From Podarcis filfolensis (lineage: Eukaryota): DNA of 64,000 nt. This document shows, in pieces, positions 1 to 21,296 of this stretch. Each line of letters begins with the position of its first letter. Within the stretch, counting starts at the first letter, position 1. Location: the NCBI GenBank assembly GCA_964270895.1, contig OZ185442.1; one strand, 5' to 3'. The position numbers were made by a program, and so were the translations under genes. The notes beneath the pieces are model-generated. The model searched no databases, was not told where the DNA came from, and saw nothing but the letters and a program-made list of their open reading frames with translations.

Positions 1-929
1 ATATTGCTTTTGCAGTATCCTGAGGTGTCCTTCACACATTGTAATAGCTCTTTGAGAGACACTTTTCTGTGGGTTCATCCCATCATATGTGGCACCAGTG
101 GGGAAGAAGATAGGTAGCTTGCCCCCTCCTTGTTGCTAGAAAGACTCTTTCCACATGCTTCCCACACCCCCAGACAGTGCTTTGCCACCCCCTTTTTCTG
201 GTGCCGCTGCTACGTCTCAAGGCACTGCTGAAATGTTTATAAAGACCTGCAGCCAAGTAGGTGATTGCAGCTGCTTGAGTCTGTGCTGCCTGGTCAGATC
301 AGGGATGGTCACCTGACAACGGGTCTGTGTAGCTAGCCTACCGCCTCCCCCCACCTCCCTTTGGTTGTAGGCCTCCTGGGTCCTGAACCTCTGGAAAAAC
401 AGCTCCAGCTGCTGCTGCATTGTAACATGTATCTGAGCTCCACTTTCTTTGACAGTTTGCTAAATGTATTCTGAATTTCTCAGTGAAGGCGCTCCCTGCC
501 TTTAAAAAAAAAAGCAAAGCTTAACTGTGAGTTATTTGTCTTCATAGTTGGAACGACTTTGATTATTAACCTTGCCAGTGTTTGTAGCTTGGAAATTGCT
601 CCAAGGAGCAGAGAAAGAAGGAAGCTGGTCAGTGCCGAGGCTGCTTTGTATGTGGGTGTAATGCAAGTTCATGCAAGGGGAATACGAAACAGGAGCAGTG
701 CTTGGCCGCAGGGGAAAGAGGCTGTTTTGTTCAGCCCATTTCTTGACTTCCTAATAAATAGTGTACATTAAGCAAGGATCATGTAGCCTGGATTTCAAAA
801 TACAGAGGGCACGTGTTCTGCTCTGTCACTGCCCTGCTTTTTGTGATGTGATACGTCACATGGTGGGCTCCTTATTTTTAAGGCATGTGCCTTGTTTGTC
901 GGCTCCAGTTACTGTTTCTTGATGATCAG

Positions 930-1045
930 AAGGCAGCCGGTGAACCGGTCGCTCCGTCAGAAAGGGACTTCCTTACTAGGGACCGGCATGGAACTTTCTA
1001 ATCCAACTCACCATTGTGTGGGATTGTATTTGAGAACCTCATGAG
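930..1045 (+). other. EIF4G3: Candidate alternative 5' exon containing a uORF (988-1044) and an ATG at 1041 that splices in frame into exon 3425
   Basis: Acceptor tttcttgatgatcag|A, donor GAG|gtgagc, locally CpG-rich; ATG AG|A ATC CCC reads M-R-I-P. No transcript evidence available. Confidence 0.45.
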
Positions 1046-3424
1046 GTGAGCTTGGGATTCTGTTCTCAGATTTCTTCCAAACTCACAGCCTGAAGGTCGC
1101 CAGTGCAATGTGTATGAGGTGAGTTGGCTTGAATCTTTGCTGTCTGGGGCTGATGGGCATGGTCTTATTAAAACAGCTGAAAGGCGCCTGGTTCAGAAAG
1201 GCTGCCGCTCACTCTGCTTCTCTTTGATCATTATATCCTGCTTTGTCTTTAAATTTTGGACTGTGTAGGGTTAAGGCTCCACATTCTTTGGCGACTTCAG
1301 ATATCTAAATTGGAGAGACAAAGGAGTGGCACTGCTGTTGCTATCCCAACAGAGCTGGGAGGTGTTTTGTGCTGGAAAATGGCCACATTGCCCTCCTTCC
1401 GTGTGGGTGGCATCTCAGTGTTCCCCCTTGGTAACAGACGTTGCTGCCTAAAGCTTCTTGTGACTCCTGTCCACAAACAGGTAGAGTCTCATGTCCAAGC
1501 AGAGTTTAGAAGGGTTCTGTTGGCTGGGCTCCTGCAAAGTAGCCATGGCTAGGTGACGCTTCTGCCTCACTCTTGTCTGTTGCCCTGTGGTGCTGGACGG
1601 GGCATGCAGCTGTGTAAACAAGCCAGAGCAGATTTTGGCTTGCCGTCAAGATCTCAGGGGTGTATTTTATTAGTCCAAGCCAGCATGCAGGAGGGGCGGG
1701 GGCAGAAGGGAAGTTCTGGCCCCTTGCCAGGTGAGGTTCAAATTGCAGTGGAGCTTTTGTGGAAATGTTGCGTGTTCCTAGTTCTGGAATGATGAGGGCC
1801 TGACTTTATCTCATGCCAGAAGGTGGGAGGGGAGCCCCACAAGGTTTGCAGAGCTCAGTCCATTGCCACATAAGTCAGCAAGTCCTGTGGTATCCCAACA
1901 TGAAGGTTTGTTTGTTTGCCGTGGCAGGAATGTTCGTGGGCAACCAGGGTGAGCAATTGTCTCCCATGCTTTCATCCTTCAGGATGTGTTCTTTACACTC
2001 CGGTAAACTTGACTCCTAGCTTGTTAACTATTTCTAGAAGGTTTGTAAGTGTGGTTTCTCTCCACTGTAGCAGACTGTTCGTACAGCTACCACCACCTCA
2101 GTAAGCTCCAGGCCACAGAGTTCCTCCCTGTCAGGTTCTTTTTCCTGGGGATGGTGTGTAGAAACCAGCATTGTCTCTTAGCTGAGTGCAAAGGTCCCAG
2201 TTCTGGTTGTGTGAGGTCAGCTGCTGCTGTTGTCAGGGATTTTCAAATGCCTTGGATAGGTTCTGGTTTTGTGGTTTGATAAAATTTAAGGGAGAATAGA
2301 CACAGAAGCAACAGGACAAGACAGGCACCTTATGGGAGAGTGGTCTAGCTGCTTGCATTTGAGTAGTAATATTATCTTTTGGTGCTTTTCGAAAGAGTGA
2401 TAATCTGCAATTTGGTGTTTACTGCCCTGGATCTCCAGGGCTTGAACCACACTCTGATGGAGGCATGCTGTTCTAGAGAGAAACACTGCCTGCTTTTTTG
2501 GTTTTTAATTGGAGCTCAGTTTAAGTTGAGGCAATTTTAGGGACAACACGCTTTTTCCTTCCTCTCTTGCCTGACCATTCTTCTCTTCATAATGAGTGTG
2601 GGAGCCTCCTTGTGTTGATAGGAAGTTCTTTATAAGCTGGCGGAAATTCATCCTCTGAACCTCTTAGCAAGTGACCACACTGCTTTAAGAAGGGAACTAG
2701 TAGTTTATGAGAGAGCTTAATTCTGTTGCAGAGAATTCTAATTGCTGAATCACATTTATTTTATTTTACCAAACCTTTTATTGTTATCCTTCTGTGGCAT
2801 TAGAAAAAAACCTTTTTTGCTACACCTTTATTTACAGTTTGGATATCCTGGATTATTGCAGCTCTTTTAATTGCAAGTTTAGGGCAGCCAATCAAAGGCA
2901 GCTTTCCTTTAAGCTACAAAATTCTCAGCCTGTTAAGAAGTGAATTCTAGTTCCCAGAACTGCTTTTAAGTAGGGGAAAGGATTAATAGAGTGAAATGCC
3001 AGCGACATAAATGCACTCTCTCTCTCTTTCTTCCTGCATTGTTGGAGACTCAGGCCTGGCCTCCGTCAGACGGATCTGCAGCTGACGAGCTGTTTTCCTG
3101 GGTGACTGAAAGAGGGTGGCCATTTTATATTGAAAATAAAAATTGGGTCGTCTGTTACAACTCTCAGCTTAGATCTCTCATTTACTCAGGTCTATTGATT
3201 TTGTTTTACTGTATCTGGTCACATCTTCTGGGAAGCTAGTTTTCGGCCGTAGAAATTATTCCAGCTGCAGTGTTGAATGTGAGCCCCTTTTCATTGTGGT
3301 TTCTGGCATTTGATAAAATCTTTTGTTTTTATGCTAGTATGGGCAAAGGATTTCACATGTTTCTTTCCTGCCGAACACACTTTCCTCTAGACTTTTGTGT
3401 TTTCCTTGATTTGCTGCTTTACAG

Positions 3425-3500
3425 AATCCCCCGGGGACCTGTGCAGCAGCCCCTGGAGGATCGAATCTTCACTCCAACCGTCTCAGCTGTGTACAGCACT
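3425..3500 (+). CDS. EIF4G3: Upstream exon of the N-terminal extension (xIPRGPVQQPLEDRIFTPTVSAVYST), phase 2 to phase 0
   Basis: Acceptor gctgctttacag|A, donor ACT|gtaagt; 76 nt, open; resembles the remembered human EIF4G3 leader (IPRGPVQQPLEDRIFTPAVSAVYST). Confidence 0.88.
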
Positions 3501-4387
3501 GTAAGTATTCCCCAGCAGTTTTGCCAAGTTCTTTGGTTCCTGTGTAGTTGTGGTTTGCTTAAGTAACACTGCTTTTCCTCCTGCAGCTAATCAACTGGAT
3601 ATGAGCTCTTAGAGCTTTGTGGGGCTGTGTGGAAAGTTTAGCTGCCTCCAGCCACAGAACAATCCTGGGACTAATCTTCATTTAGAAAAGCAGCTCTGTT
3701 TTAAAACCACTTGTTTAATTCAAAATAAGCAAATGAATAATTCAGAGTTGAACTTTCTCAACAGAAACTGCTGGTTTAGGAAGATGCCCTCATTCAGGCC
3801 TCTTCTGCCCAGTATCTTTGGCAGGTGAGACCTGATTCAGATAACATGTTTGCAGTGCAATCACAACTCCTCAATATAAGCTGCAAAAGTTCTTAAAGTC
3901 TTTTGGGTGTTCTTTAACATAGTTGCTGGAGTTACACTAAAAAAGGAATGAGTTCTTATGGAAGGCAAGAATGAAAGAGTCTGCCACATATTGACTGTGG
4001 TGCTAAATCGTTCTAGTACTGGAGCTCAGTTAAAGGCTGCTCCTCAAATGGTGTCTTGTGGGTTCTGTGTGTGTGTGTTTGCCTTTCTTTGCCCATAATG
4101 GGTGGATGCCCAAGAGGTGTGTTTTGTGCCTGGCATCTGAACAGGTAGCCCACAGTGAAGTGACTCTTCCAGAAAAGAGATTAGGAAGGATTAGCTGATC
4201 TAGCCACTCCGGGTTTATGCCAAAGATGTGGGTCAGGAGGCCGGGCTATTTGGCTGTGTGACTGTTGCTGAGCTGTGAGAAAAATGCTGCGTTTTTTAAA
4301 GGCACGATATGAGCATCAAGGCAGTGAGACCCACTGCTAATGAACTAGCCCAGATGGCCACCAACACTGTTTATTTTTTCATTACAG

Positions 4388-10955: not shown

Positions 10956-11084
10956 GTCACGCAGGTTGCGAGACAGCCAGGCCCTCCTGCCCCCTCCCCT
11001 TACTCTGCACATGAAATAGGCAAGGGGCACCCATCCCTTGCTGCAACGCCACCAGGACATGCCTCCTCCCCAAGCCTCACCCAG
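10956..11084 (+). CDS. EIF4G3: Upstream exon of the N-terminal extension (VTQVARQPGPPAPSPYSAHEIGKGHPSLAATPPGHASSPSLTQ)
   Basis: Perfect TACTAAC branch point at 10932-10938, acceptor ctcctcacag|G, donor CAG|gtaagg; 129 nt, phase 0/0, open. Confidence 0.9.
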
Positions 11085-13610
11085 GTAAGGTTTGGCGCCT
11101 GCTTCTCAGGTCTGAGTTGCCTTTCTATAAGTTTATGGGGTGTGGGTGAGATCTTGGCTTTGCGCAGTGCTAACCCTGGTCTGCATGCTACTTTCACTTG
11201 AGCTGCTCTTCCTCTTGCTGGCCAAGGATAGGGGAAGAGGAGAGGGGTTCCCTTTAGGGCGCTCCCCACCCCAACCCCCTCAATTGGAAATTGGCAGGGA
11301 TGCCTCTCGTGTCAGACTAAGCGCTTTTTTTTTTTGCTAAGTGGCGGTGATTTTAATAACATGCCTTTAGGCAGGTACATTTTTCTTTTCTGACCAGCAC
11401 TCATTGCATGTGCTGAAAGAGAAAATGGACACAGTAAAAATAATACACGTGGACAAGGAATTTAGATAATTGAAAACCATAACTTGTTTTTAATCACTTA
11501 ATTCCTCAAAACGTTTCCAAGAGACGAGGGATGACGTGGCAAAGCAGAGGAGGAATGTATTTGTAGTTAGCAAAGGTAGGGCAGATGCGCTGTCCAAGGG
11601 TGGGCCTCATGCCTAGGCAATGTGACCTGTGGCAGCTTCAGACAGTGAGCTGCTGAGCACCAAGGCCTCCTTGGCAATGATGCCTCAAGGCAGAGTTTGT
11701 GGGAGCTTTCAGAAGCATACAAGTGGAGGGGGCATCGGCCCCTTCTTTGTTTCTGTAGATTCCTGCATGAGACTAGAAGTCTTGGTTCTCGGACAGACGA
11801 GCTGGTGCTTGAAATCCTACTTGGAACATAATCAGCTGCTTTGATTCCCATGATAACTTCCAGACCCTCAAGCGTGATGCAGGGCCCCATTTTGGTTCCT
11901 TAGTAAAGGAGGAATTGGGGGTGAGGCGAGGTTGAGCTTTTTTTATACAGGCATGAGAGAACCCTCTGCATCTGTTTCCTCCAGCCAGACAGTGCATGAG
12001 TCACTCAAGTTGTTGCACCTTTTCCAGTGGACTTGACATGTGCATCATGTGACAGTAGGCATGACACCCCACCAGTTCAGCTCAAAACTTGCTGCCAAGT
12101 TTATTGATAGAAAAGGATTTTGTGTAGTCTTGTGTGTTAAGAGCCTAACCAAAGAAGACAAAAAGTGCTCTGAAAGTTGTGGAGTGGCTACTGTAGTAAC
12201 TGTTGTGGGCACCAGAAAAAGCTACCCTGCCCAGCTGCATCTCCACGACCTCCAACTCCTGTGTCAATCCCCAATATTCCAGAAGAGAGATGAAAGCCAC
12301 AACCTTTTCCCACCTCCAGGCATCAGAAAAAACTGCAAATATTCCTTACGAATTTATCAGTTGAGTCCTGAGTACAGTGAGGTTCTTCCACAGAAAGTCA
12401 CTCCAGAATGTTGCACCTCTGATTGTGCAACGCTTTCTCCAGATTTCTTACCTGAACTTAAGTCACGGCCAAGTCTGGCAGGTCAGCCCTGCACAGAGTC
12501 TGCTAGTCTTCTTAGTTTGATTCTAAACAAAAGCCTCCTCCTCGCCTCAGAAGGTCTTGCAATTCTTTGTCTGCCAACAAGAGGCACTTCTTGTTCATTT
12601 GTTATAGATCTTTCTCTGATGGGTCCAGATAATTTTGAATGCCACCGCTTCCTCCACTTCCAAAAAGGGGGGATCCATTGCTCACCCACTCAGGGCTTAA
12701 GGCAATTGTTAACCAATATTTTGCCCGTATTCTCAGTTGTTAACAGGATATGCACTCTTGCTTCTTTCCAGGGCACAGGCCTAAATTTACCAAAAGTAAT
12801 TCACATTTTTGATACATGGCATAAGAATATATAAAGTCTTGTACATTCATCTTTGGGATGTTGTCATGAGTGTAGCGTGCTGATCATAGGAAAATGTATT
12901 GGTCACCTGTCTCTGATAACTGATCGTATTTCTCCACTTTTTCGTTTTTTCCCCCTGGAGAGGCAGTCTTACTGAAGCACATAGTAGCTTGTTCTGTAAA
13001 AAGGGTTGCCTGCATAGATCCATTTGGTTTCCCCATTCAGATCCCTGCAACCTCACAGGAGACTTGGAGAGGGGGGTGTCAAACAAAGGAGCTGGTCTCC
13101 TGCAGGGGGCGTTGAGAATTGATGGCAACTGGTCCACAGACCTTTCACATTGCTGTTTTGAGATTAGCAGAGTCCTGCACTTGAAGCCACTGAGAGCATA
13201 ATGACAGGACAGGTCACTACTAGTGGGTACCCTTTTATCTAGAGTACCAAGCTCTGCTGACAACAATTCCCTAGTCCTAGAGTAGGGGAAGAATGGGTAG
13301 AAATGTCCCTGGGATGCTTTTGTTCATTTAGCCCATTGTAAAAAGGCAGGTAGAAAGGGAGGTCGTCCCCATCCAGGTGTGTAGAAAGTATTTTGAGAAG
13401 TTGGAGGGGATGCATCTGCTCCCATCAGCCTGGTAGAAGGGGAGAGAGAACGGAGCATTGACGTGGAGATGTGCCAACCCCTGTCCATCCCCCACCCACC
13501 CGCCATCATTCTCGTCCTCCCCACCCCCCTCTCCCCCTCTCTCTGTCTCTTTCTCTGTCACTCTCTTTCTTTCTCTCTTACTCTGTCGCTCTCTTTCACT
13601 CTCGCTCCAG

Positions 13611-13715
13611 CAGCCAGGAGGGAGGAGGGACAGAAGCTTTCCACCCCACCCAAGAGCCAGCAGTCTTTTTGAAGATCCAAGGGAACTGGTGCAAAGGATT
13701 CTGGGATGTGGGATG
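13611..13715 (+). other. EIF4G3: Candidate alternative first or cassette exon (105 nt) ending in ATG
   Basis: About 100-nt CT tract, then ctccag|CAG (NAGNAG); donor GGGATG|gtgagt; open in phase 0 (QPGGRRDRSFPPHPRASSLFEDPRELVQRILGCGM). Confidence 0.4.
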
Positions 13716-14142
13716 GTGAGTGACAAGAGGGAAAAAAAGGTTAAGTGATGCCCTGCTGGAAAAGCCTGGCTCTTGTTTTTCTAATGGGTGGAGATCTCAT
13801 TTAGGGTGGGGCCATTGTGGCTTACAGGGGAGGCCCCTCCTGCAAAGGCGTGGAAGACTCAGGGCAGAAGGAATGTTCATGGGGAGCCTTAAAAACACGT
13901 TGAGAACTTGAGATGTATGGAGGAGCTCCGTTCAGTATTTTGCCCTTGAGGCATCTTACCATGCCATCTGGACTTTTTGCTTCAAAGCTGTTGCTCTGTC
14001 TTGGAAAGTGTTAAATTCTATGGCAAAGTTTCAAATTTGGAGTAGGCATAGATGTGCAGGGTGAGAGTCTTAGCTTCATGTCCAGTCTGAGGATGGTGGC
14101 TTAGCATTTTGTCGGCCCACATCTGCCTCCCCCATACACTCT

Positions 14143-21200: not shown

Positions 21201-21296
21201 GCCCCTTACCCCTCTGGACAGAACGCCGCACCGACTACGCTGGTGTACCCGCAGGCCCCTCAGACGATGAGCACCCAGCCTCAGACGCGCTCGCCG
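21201..21296 (+). CDS. EIF4G3: Exon with the canonical start codon at 21267 ([32 protein letters not shown])
   Basis: Acceptor cccatggcag|G, donor CCG|gtaagg; 96 nt; ATG context cagacgATGA; CpG-rich relative to the flanks. Confidence 0.95.

Follow-up and report, generated by a model that had tools for sequence, protein, structure and literature searches.

A probable internal first exon of squamate EIF4G3 with a conserved upstream start codon in its leader

Introduction

Mammalian EIF4G3, the gene for eIF4GII, reportedly has alternative promoters and alternative 5' exons and makes use of a CUG start codon. The squamate locus analysed here resembles this arrangement in that the gene is the same and several promoters (putative in our case) and 5' exons lead, with differing N-termini, into one open reading frame. 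It differs in that the squamate exon discussed below provides an AUG that lies four codons ahead of exon 2, a feature for which a mammalian counterpart was not found. Primate protein models beginning MG- or MPR-IPRGPVQQ exist, and these starts may or may not be homologous to the squamate exon; ape and monkey protein models served in this analysis solely to list the residues that precede IPRGP.

The leader of the squamate transcript also has much in common with ordinary leaders that contain an upstream open reading frame (uORF): one short uORF in a strong context, a spacer, here of 63-69 nt, the main AUG, and an upstream AUG the position of which is conserved. Nothing in the squamate leader is unusual compared with such leaders; the uORF peptide is unconserved and translation of the uORF is presumed. 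A more specialized arrangement is coupled termination-reinitiation at overlapping stop and start codons, as in the synthesis of calicivirus VP2 and influenza B virus BM2. The letters AUGA are found in the lizard sequence, but in the RNA observed the overlapping AUG opens an ORF of two codons in place of eIF4G3, and the overlap is not conserved in snakes.

The closest described feature of the protein itself is the conserved, non-AUG-initiated N-terminal extension of EIF4G3, for which an AUC has been proposed as the start in mammals (Ivanov et al. 2011, PMC3105428); the idea of autoregulation by start-codon choice was already raised in that paper. The same extension is present in the locus studied here, where the exons beginning at 3425, 10956 and 21201 are open, free of AUG and conserved, whereas the alternative exon of the lizard reaches the extension from an AUG and the sauropsid models of major exon 1 have an AUG as well.

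In a preliminary description of the 64,000-nt stretch of lizard DNA analysed here (the window), the segment 930-1045 was proposed to be an exon that hands an AUG to the EIF4G3 extension by means of an AUGA overlap between a uORF stop and a start codon. We suggest instead that this segment probably makes up the first two-thirds of an alternative EIF4G3 first exon that is conserved and extends from about 900/932 to 1118. This exon lies in intron 1 of the major transcript, contains a uORF in its leader and would have its own promoter. A search of the literature found no description of a squamate alternative EIF4G3 first exon; the automatic gene model of the cobra already includes the exon.

Results

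The EIF4G3 locus and the segment 930-1045

EIF4G3 lies on the plus strand of the window, as do the promoter-like block, the uORF and the exons described here, and the part of the gene that is present reaches from an early 5' exon as far as the W2 domain. In the long isoform, exon 2 (3425-3500; …IPRGPVQQPLEDRIFTPTVSAVYST) starts with A ATC, comprises 25 codons and is conserved in vertebrate models. Exon 3 of the extension (10956-11084; VTQVARQ…SLTQ) adds 43 codons, and loose ends of RNA sequences behind 3502 continue into it. The exon with the classical AUG (21267-21269) spans 21201-21296 and contributes 22 codons ahead of that AUG. Taken together, 3425-3500, 10956-11084 and 21201-21266 amount to 90 codons that include neither a stop nor an AUG, and this stretch is conserved in vertebrate models. 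An Rfam scan of the window gave no match; scanning for promoters and terminators of the bacterial type is not meaningful for this genome.

The letters on which the preliminary description was built are all present: the 116-nt segment is preceded by cag at 927-929, the uORF occupies 988-1044, ATGA lies at 1041-1044, and GAG|gtgagc is found at 1045|1046. Its arithmetic is likewise correct, in that ATG AG joined to A ATC reads M-R-IPRGPVQQ in frame and would give 92 residues (2+25+43+22). The segment had been called CpG-rich; with 5 CpG, an observed/expected ratio of 0.67 compared with 0.25 for the whole window, and a G+C content of 51%, it stands above its surroundings but is no CpG island.

RNA of related species passes position 1045 and, in one contig, is spliced at 1118

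RNA data were available for relatives of the window species, and positions 1-3700 of the window were compared with poly(A) reads of organism C (runs X21 and X22) and with contigs from runs X1 (organism A) and X4 (organism B). Two X4 contig records outline the RNA-covered part of the alternative first exon, 932-1118: record 8 covers 932-1097 without a break, through 1045 and the uORF, and record 9 joins 1091-1118 to 3425-3502, skipping an intron of 2306 nt with GT..AG borders (1119-3424), and then runs into exon 10956. The joint was reported as 1116>3423 and brought to 1118|3425 by the 'cut +2' shift of the tool. It is held by a single contig of depth 4 in one run, the RNA nature of which is only guessed, and its short side measures 26-28 letters compared with 31 in the bridging rule of the tool. 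A perfect match that stops exactly at a GT, on the correct strand and 2.3 kb from exon 2, is not a chance match. Record 9 therefore identifies 1118|1119, the twin of the site at 1045, as the donor in use. The contig with this joint is also the only one in X4 that holds exon 2.

The borders originally drawn at 930 and 1045 are not confirmed by these RNA data. None of the four runs (X1, X4, X21, X22) contains a joint from 1045, including the junction 1045-3425 for which the preliminary description had recommended a search, and no splicing into 930 was seen. Record 4 of X1 also passes unspliced through 1045. In this run of organism A, cover is contiguous over 321-1334 at a depth of 2.5-7, versus 51 on exon 2, and looks like unspliced background.

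Splicing of 1118 to 3425 combines ATG TGT ATG AG (1108-1118) with A ATC to read M-C-M-R-IPRGPVQQ…, and the frame from ATG 1108, as well as from ATG 1114, is open to the classical AUG, which is residue 95. Organism A has a T>C change at 1113 that is synonymous. The uORF MELSNPTHHCVGLYLRTS* (988-1044; 18 codons plus TGA at 1042-1044) lies within the RNA-covered exon, 5' of the main AUG, and begins in accggcATGg with G at -3 and G at +4. Its AUG shares the frame of AUG 1108 (gcaATGt) and AUG 1114 (tgtATGa), and in the lizard its stop is separated from AUG 1108 by 63 nt. Translation of the uORF and a protein start at AUG 1108 are both predicted.

Because the RNA runs through 1045, the AUG at 1041-1043 that overlaps the uORF stop yields only AUG-AGG-UGA (1041-1049) and not eIF4G3. 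The AUGA start codon of the preliminary description is thereby lost from this RNA, and the predicted start of the protein lies at least 63 nt past the uORF stop. What is retained from that proposal is that a 5' exon of EIF4G3 is located here and offers the IPRGPVQQ extension an AUG behind a uORF; the donor is 1118 and the AUG is 1108 or 1114, not 1041.

The two potential exon ends are similar in sequence. There are two copies of the ten letters ATGAGGTGAG, one at 1041-1050 and the other 73 nt further on, at 1114-1123, and each copy would provide an in-frame AUG and a strong donor; the second copy alone, which is followed by T, is conserved and was seen in use in RNA. In a rough, uncalibrated position-weight matrix, the donor at 1118 scores 11.49 and that at 1045 scores 9.9, a value reached by 29 of the 3704 GT sites in the window (top 1%). 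The donor-like GTGAGC at 1046-1051 is strong by consensus and its use was not seen in the RNA; the letters aligned to it in the snakes are GCTGAG. The possibility that the twin decamer arose by a local duplication was considered and dropped: the aligned snake sequence already resembles the decamer, so that a few substitutions suffice to generate it.

The exon, its donor and the position of the uORF are conserved in snakes

Conservation was analysed in an alignment of five species, i.e. the window lizard together with Naja, Ophiophagus, Crotalus adamanteus and Thamnophis sirtalis, and protein models were sought by a word search with an open frame around exon 3425. A homologous first-exon unit is found in all four snakes 2.2-3.1 kb upstream of exon 2, and in three of them (Naja, Crotalus and Thamnophis) the first intron of the alternative transcript measures about 2.2-3.1 kb. 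In Thamnophis the unit follows major exon 1 at a distance of 19.7 kb and precedes exon 2 by 3.1 kb, which places the alternative exon inside intron 1. The automatic model of the Naja naja hypothetical protein E2320_006180 (P0005) begins MCVR-IPRGPVQQ, and the start of this model corresponds to ATGTGCGTTAG|GTGAGT in the Naja locus, 2.2 kb upstream of exon 2. The gene model of Ophiophagus (king cobra) reads through the homologous exon.

Invariant in all five species are CACGTG, GTCACATG, the A/T box TTATTTTTAAG, the ATGG of the uORF (988-991), ATG 1108 and AG|GTGAGTT, and the stretch GCAATGTG..AG|GTGAGTT is kept between lizard and snakes. By contrast, four elements in the alignment are confined to the lizard: ATG 1041, the ATGA overlap, the GT at 1046 and ATG 1114, which is replaced by GTG or GTT in the snakes. 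The sequence flanking the promoter-like block and the exon could not be aligned between lizard and snakes. Conservation of the ATGA and of the 1045 donor, on which the preliminary description would have had its proposal judged, extends to organisms A and B, close relatives that are identical to the window at 1041-1051 and have the 1045 site intact, but not to the four snakes.

The upstream AUG is a different matter. The strong context ascribed to it is confirmed: in every species compared, position -3 is A or G and position +4 is G, and the codon is kept in position in the five squamates. Downstream of the presumed start site, the snake leaders contain no further AUG besides those of the uORF and of the main ORF. 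The uORF has 28 codons in the snakes and, after an indel, 18 in the lizard; the first 14 codons align without gaps, and all uORFs share the frame of the main AUG, from which their stops are 63-69 nt away. In a codon-position test between Crotalus and Naja, the differences were 7/4/9 and gave no signature of selection on the peptide, which argues that the presence and place of the uORF are conserved and that its peptide is not.

In birds, isoforms X14 and X15 of Falco peregrinus begin MCCR-IPRGPVQQ, and the falcon start may be the same exon as the squamate one. In Merops (bee-eater), the 10 kb ahead of exon 2 contain neither an MCxR+GT unit nor any similarity.

A promoter-like block precedes the exon

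A conserved block at 780-905 has the appearance of a promoter and comprises CACGTG (810-815), GTCACATG (855-862) and the TATA-like A/T box (872-882). In blastn comparisons, window positions 778-899 match Ophiophagus with 77.6% identity (E 2e-13) and Thamnophis with 76% (E 6e-12), and with relaxed scoring the block matches Crotalus with E 1e-15. In the four species for which it was measured, the main AUG follows the A/T box by 236-245 nt, and the first RNA-covered base, 932, is 50-60 nt downstream of the box. The A/T box also fits the MEF2 consensus YTAWWWWTAR; we treat this as a lead only.

Neither a joint nor a loose end occurs at 930 in any of the four runs. The cag that had been described as an acceptor more likely lies just downstream of the transcription start, and the true 5' end of the exon is probably at about 900-930. 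Promoter activity and the start site, as well as any tissue restriction, are what we infer here.

The major upstream exon lies outside the window

In both poly(A) runs of organism C (X21, X22), depth is zero on 869-1240 and exon 3425-3500 is covered; all 13 reads (6+7) that enter exon 3425 come from another exon, which encodes …RALQTQPPQQ before IPRGPVQQ, in frame. Given this zero cover and the origin of all 13 junctions, the alternative form is at best minor or tissue-restricted. The other upstream exon was not found in the window at up to 3 mismatches, and neither in the window nor in the cobra locus at up to 6; the major exon 1 of the lizard is outside the window.

Models of major exon 1 from turtles, crocodilians, birds and some mammals begin MS[LV]PQK… and end …N-I/L-R-A-L-(Q-T/P-P)-Q-P-P-Q-Q, and this end agrees with the loose-end sequence of organism C. 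These models suggest that the sauropsid long form probably has an AUG of its own. Since the alternative exon supplies an AUG and the sauropsid models of major exon 1 begin with one, no non-AUG start is needed for the extension; the premise of the preliminary description that the long isoform otherwise depends on a non-AUG start is therefore weak for reptiles, and the non-AUG start is a mammalian issue.

Other gene models have different starts in this region. Colubrid models begin MRALQAPPPQQ, and in Thamnophis the upstream frame is still open, beside an assembly gap. The colubrid Met (Thamnophis L007 3001; P0080, P0087, P0088, P0136 and P0137) occupies the Ile/Leu position in the …N-I-R-A-L-Q of other vertebrates. 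The UniRef model of Podarcis muralis EIF4G3 (P0095) has an extension identical to that of the window and a start, MLETQAW…VVCYNSQ-IPRGP, that is read from 3036-3166. The end of this stretch lacks a GT donor and RNA reads do not cover it, so that the P. muralis start is probably an annotation artefact.

A separate transcribed stretch was observed at 249-744, where the depth of poly(A) RNA of organism C (up to about 8) and of X1 contigs (about 7) is well above that of the flanks, and AATAAA is found at 753-758. The stretch resembles nothing in the snake loci and is present only once in the window; it may be a non-coding RNA or a transcript polyadenylated within the intron.

Discussion

Combining the RNA data with the comparison to snakes, we consider it likely that 930-1045 belongs to a longer alternative first exon and that, as part of this reading, the 1045 donor and the ATGA overlap imitate, in the lizard only, the real 3' end of the exon. 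That the exon ends at 1045 after all and is spliced from there to 3425, so that the long isoform would be reached through the AUGA overlap by termination-reinitiation or leaky scanning, seems highly improbable to us. The strength of the donor by consensus (9.9 in our rough scoring, within the top 1% of GT sites), its integrity in organisms A and B and the in-frame connection of ATG AG to A ATC are compatible with its use, and rare variants are lost from contigs, so that the site may be used at a low level, also in the window species. These points have to be set against four runs that lack a 1045 joint, two contigs that pass through the site, the absence of the ATG, the overlap and the GT in four snakes in which the 1118 end is invariant, and a cobra gene model with an end of the 1118 type. 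A cassette exon, on the other hand, would have the same 1118 donor and would be entered at cag|930 from major exon 1; it would place stops in the long frame, and the protein would restart at AUG 1108. We regard this as unlikely: although 930 follows an AG with a moderate pyrimidine tract and an X4 contig begins at 932, two bases past it, no run has a loose end or joint there, the AG does not align to any conserved snake acceptor, and the cobra model begins within the exon. Moreover, the conserved block has its invariant A/T box 50-60 nt upstream, which fits a core promoter.

It is also conceivable that there is no functional exon, that the conserved block is an intronic enhancer or another regulatory element, and that the spliced contig stems from noisy use of a cryptic donor. 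The zero reads in two deep poly(A) runs, the single contig of low depth, and the X1 cover, which is at the level of the neighbouring intron (2.5-2.8 versus 51 on exon 2), would all fit. Noise, however, fails to explain an invariant AUG, an in-frame link to exon 2 and a perfect donor across the lizard-snake split; independent gene models begin in the exon (Naja) or read through it (Ophiophagus), and the sole X4 contig with exon 2 is joined to it. We regard this reading, too, as highly improbable.

According to the alternative first exon model that we favor, the promoter-like block at 780-905 would start transcription near 900-930, and the resulting first exon would be spliced from 1118|1119 to exon 3425. 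The leader would contain one positionally conserved uORF in strong context (AUG 988), ending 63 nt before AUG 1108, which would be reached via leaky scanning or ordinary reinitiation. The predicted product, M-C-M-R-IPRGPVQQ…, would retain the 90-residue extension and lack the Pro/Ala-rich part from major exon 1, which in other sauropsids accounts for approximately 57-67 residues.

Alternative first exons that contain a uORF are an ordinary type of feature. As a correction of gene models, our analysis suggests that squamate EIF4G3 has an internal promoter and a first exon that together would give rise to an AUG-started, N-terminally extended form behind one conserved uORF, and in that way the squamate exon would add a reptile example to the multiple promoters and N-termini already known for eIF4GII. 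The alternative leader is simple and can be tested in reporters; it lends no support to a new mechanism of initiation. The repeated ten-letter motif illustrates how exon calling from sequence alone can be misled.

More speculatively, and with very little expectation that it is so, point mutations in lacertids may have made a twin 5' splice site at 1045, the use of which would put the uORF stop over the eIF4G3 start as AUGA. In that case, the choice of splice site would decide whether reinitiation on the mRNA from one promoter takes place after a 63-nt spacer or is coupled to termination, and this switch would act on the mRNA of an initiation factor.

Two further observations concern the surroundings of the exons described here. 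In Thamnophis, a gene with a Peptidase_M13_N domain (ECE1-like; L007 1-2596) is located just upstream of EIF4G3 on the same strand. Within EIF4G3, window positions 13533-13738 are 93% identical to Naja, 92% to Crotalus and 89% to Ophiophagus, compared with 84-89% for exons 2-3. In the Thamnophis model this block is an in-frame cassette of 35 residues ending …GCGM before APYP, and in the Naja model it is read in a different frame, to a stop.
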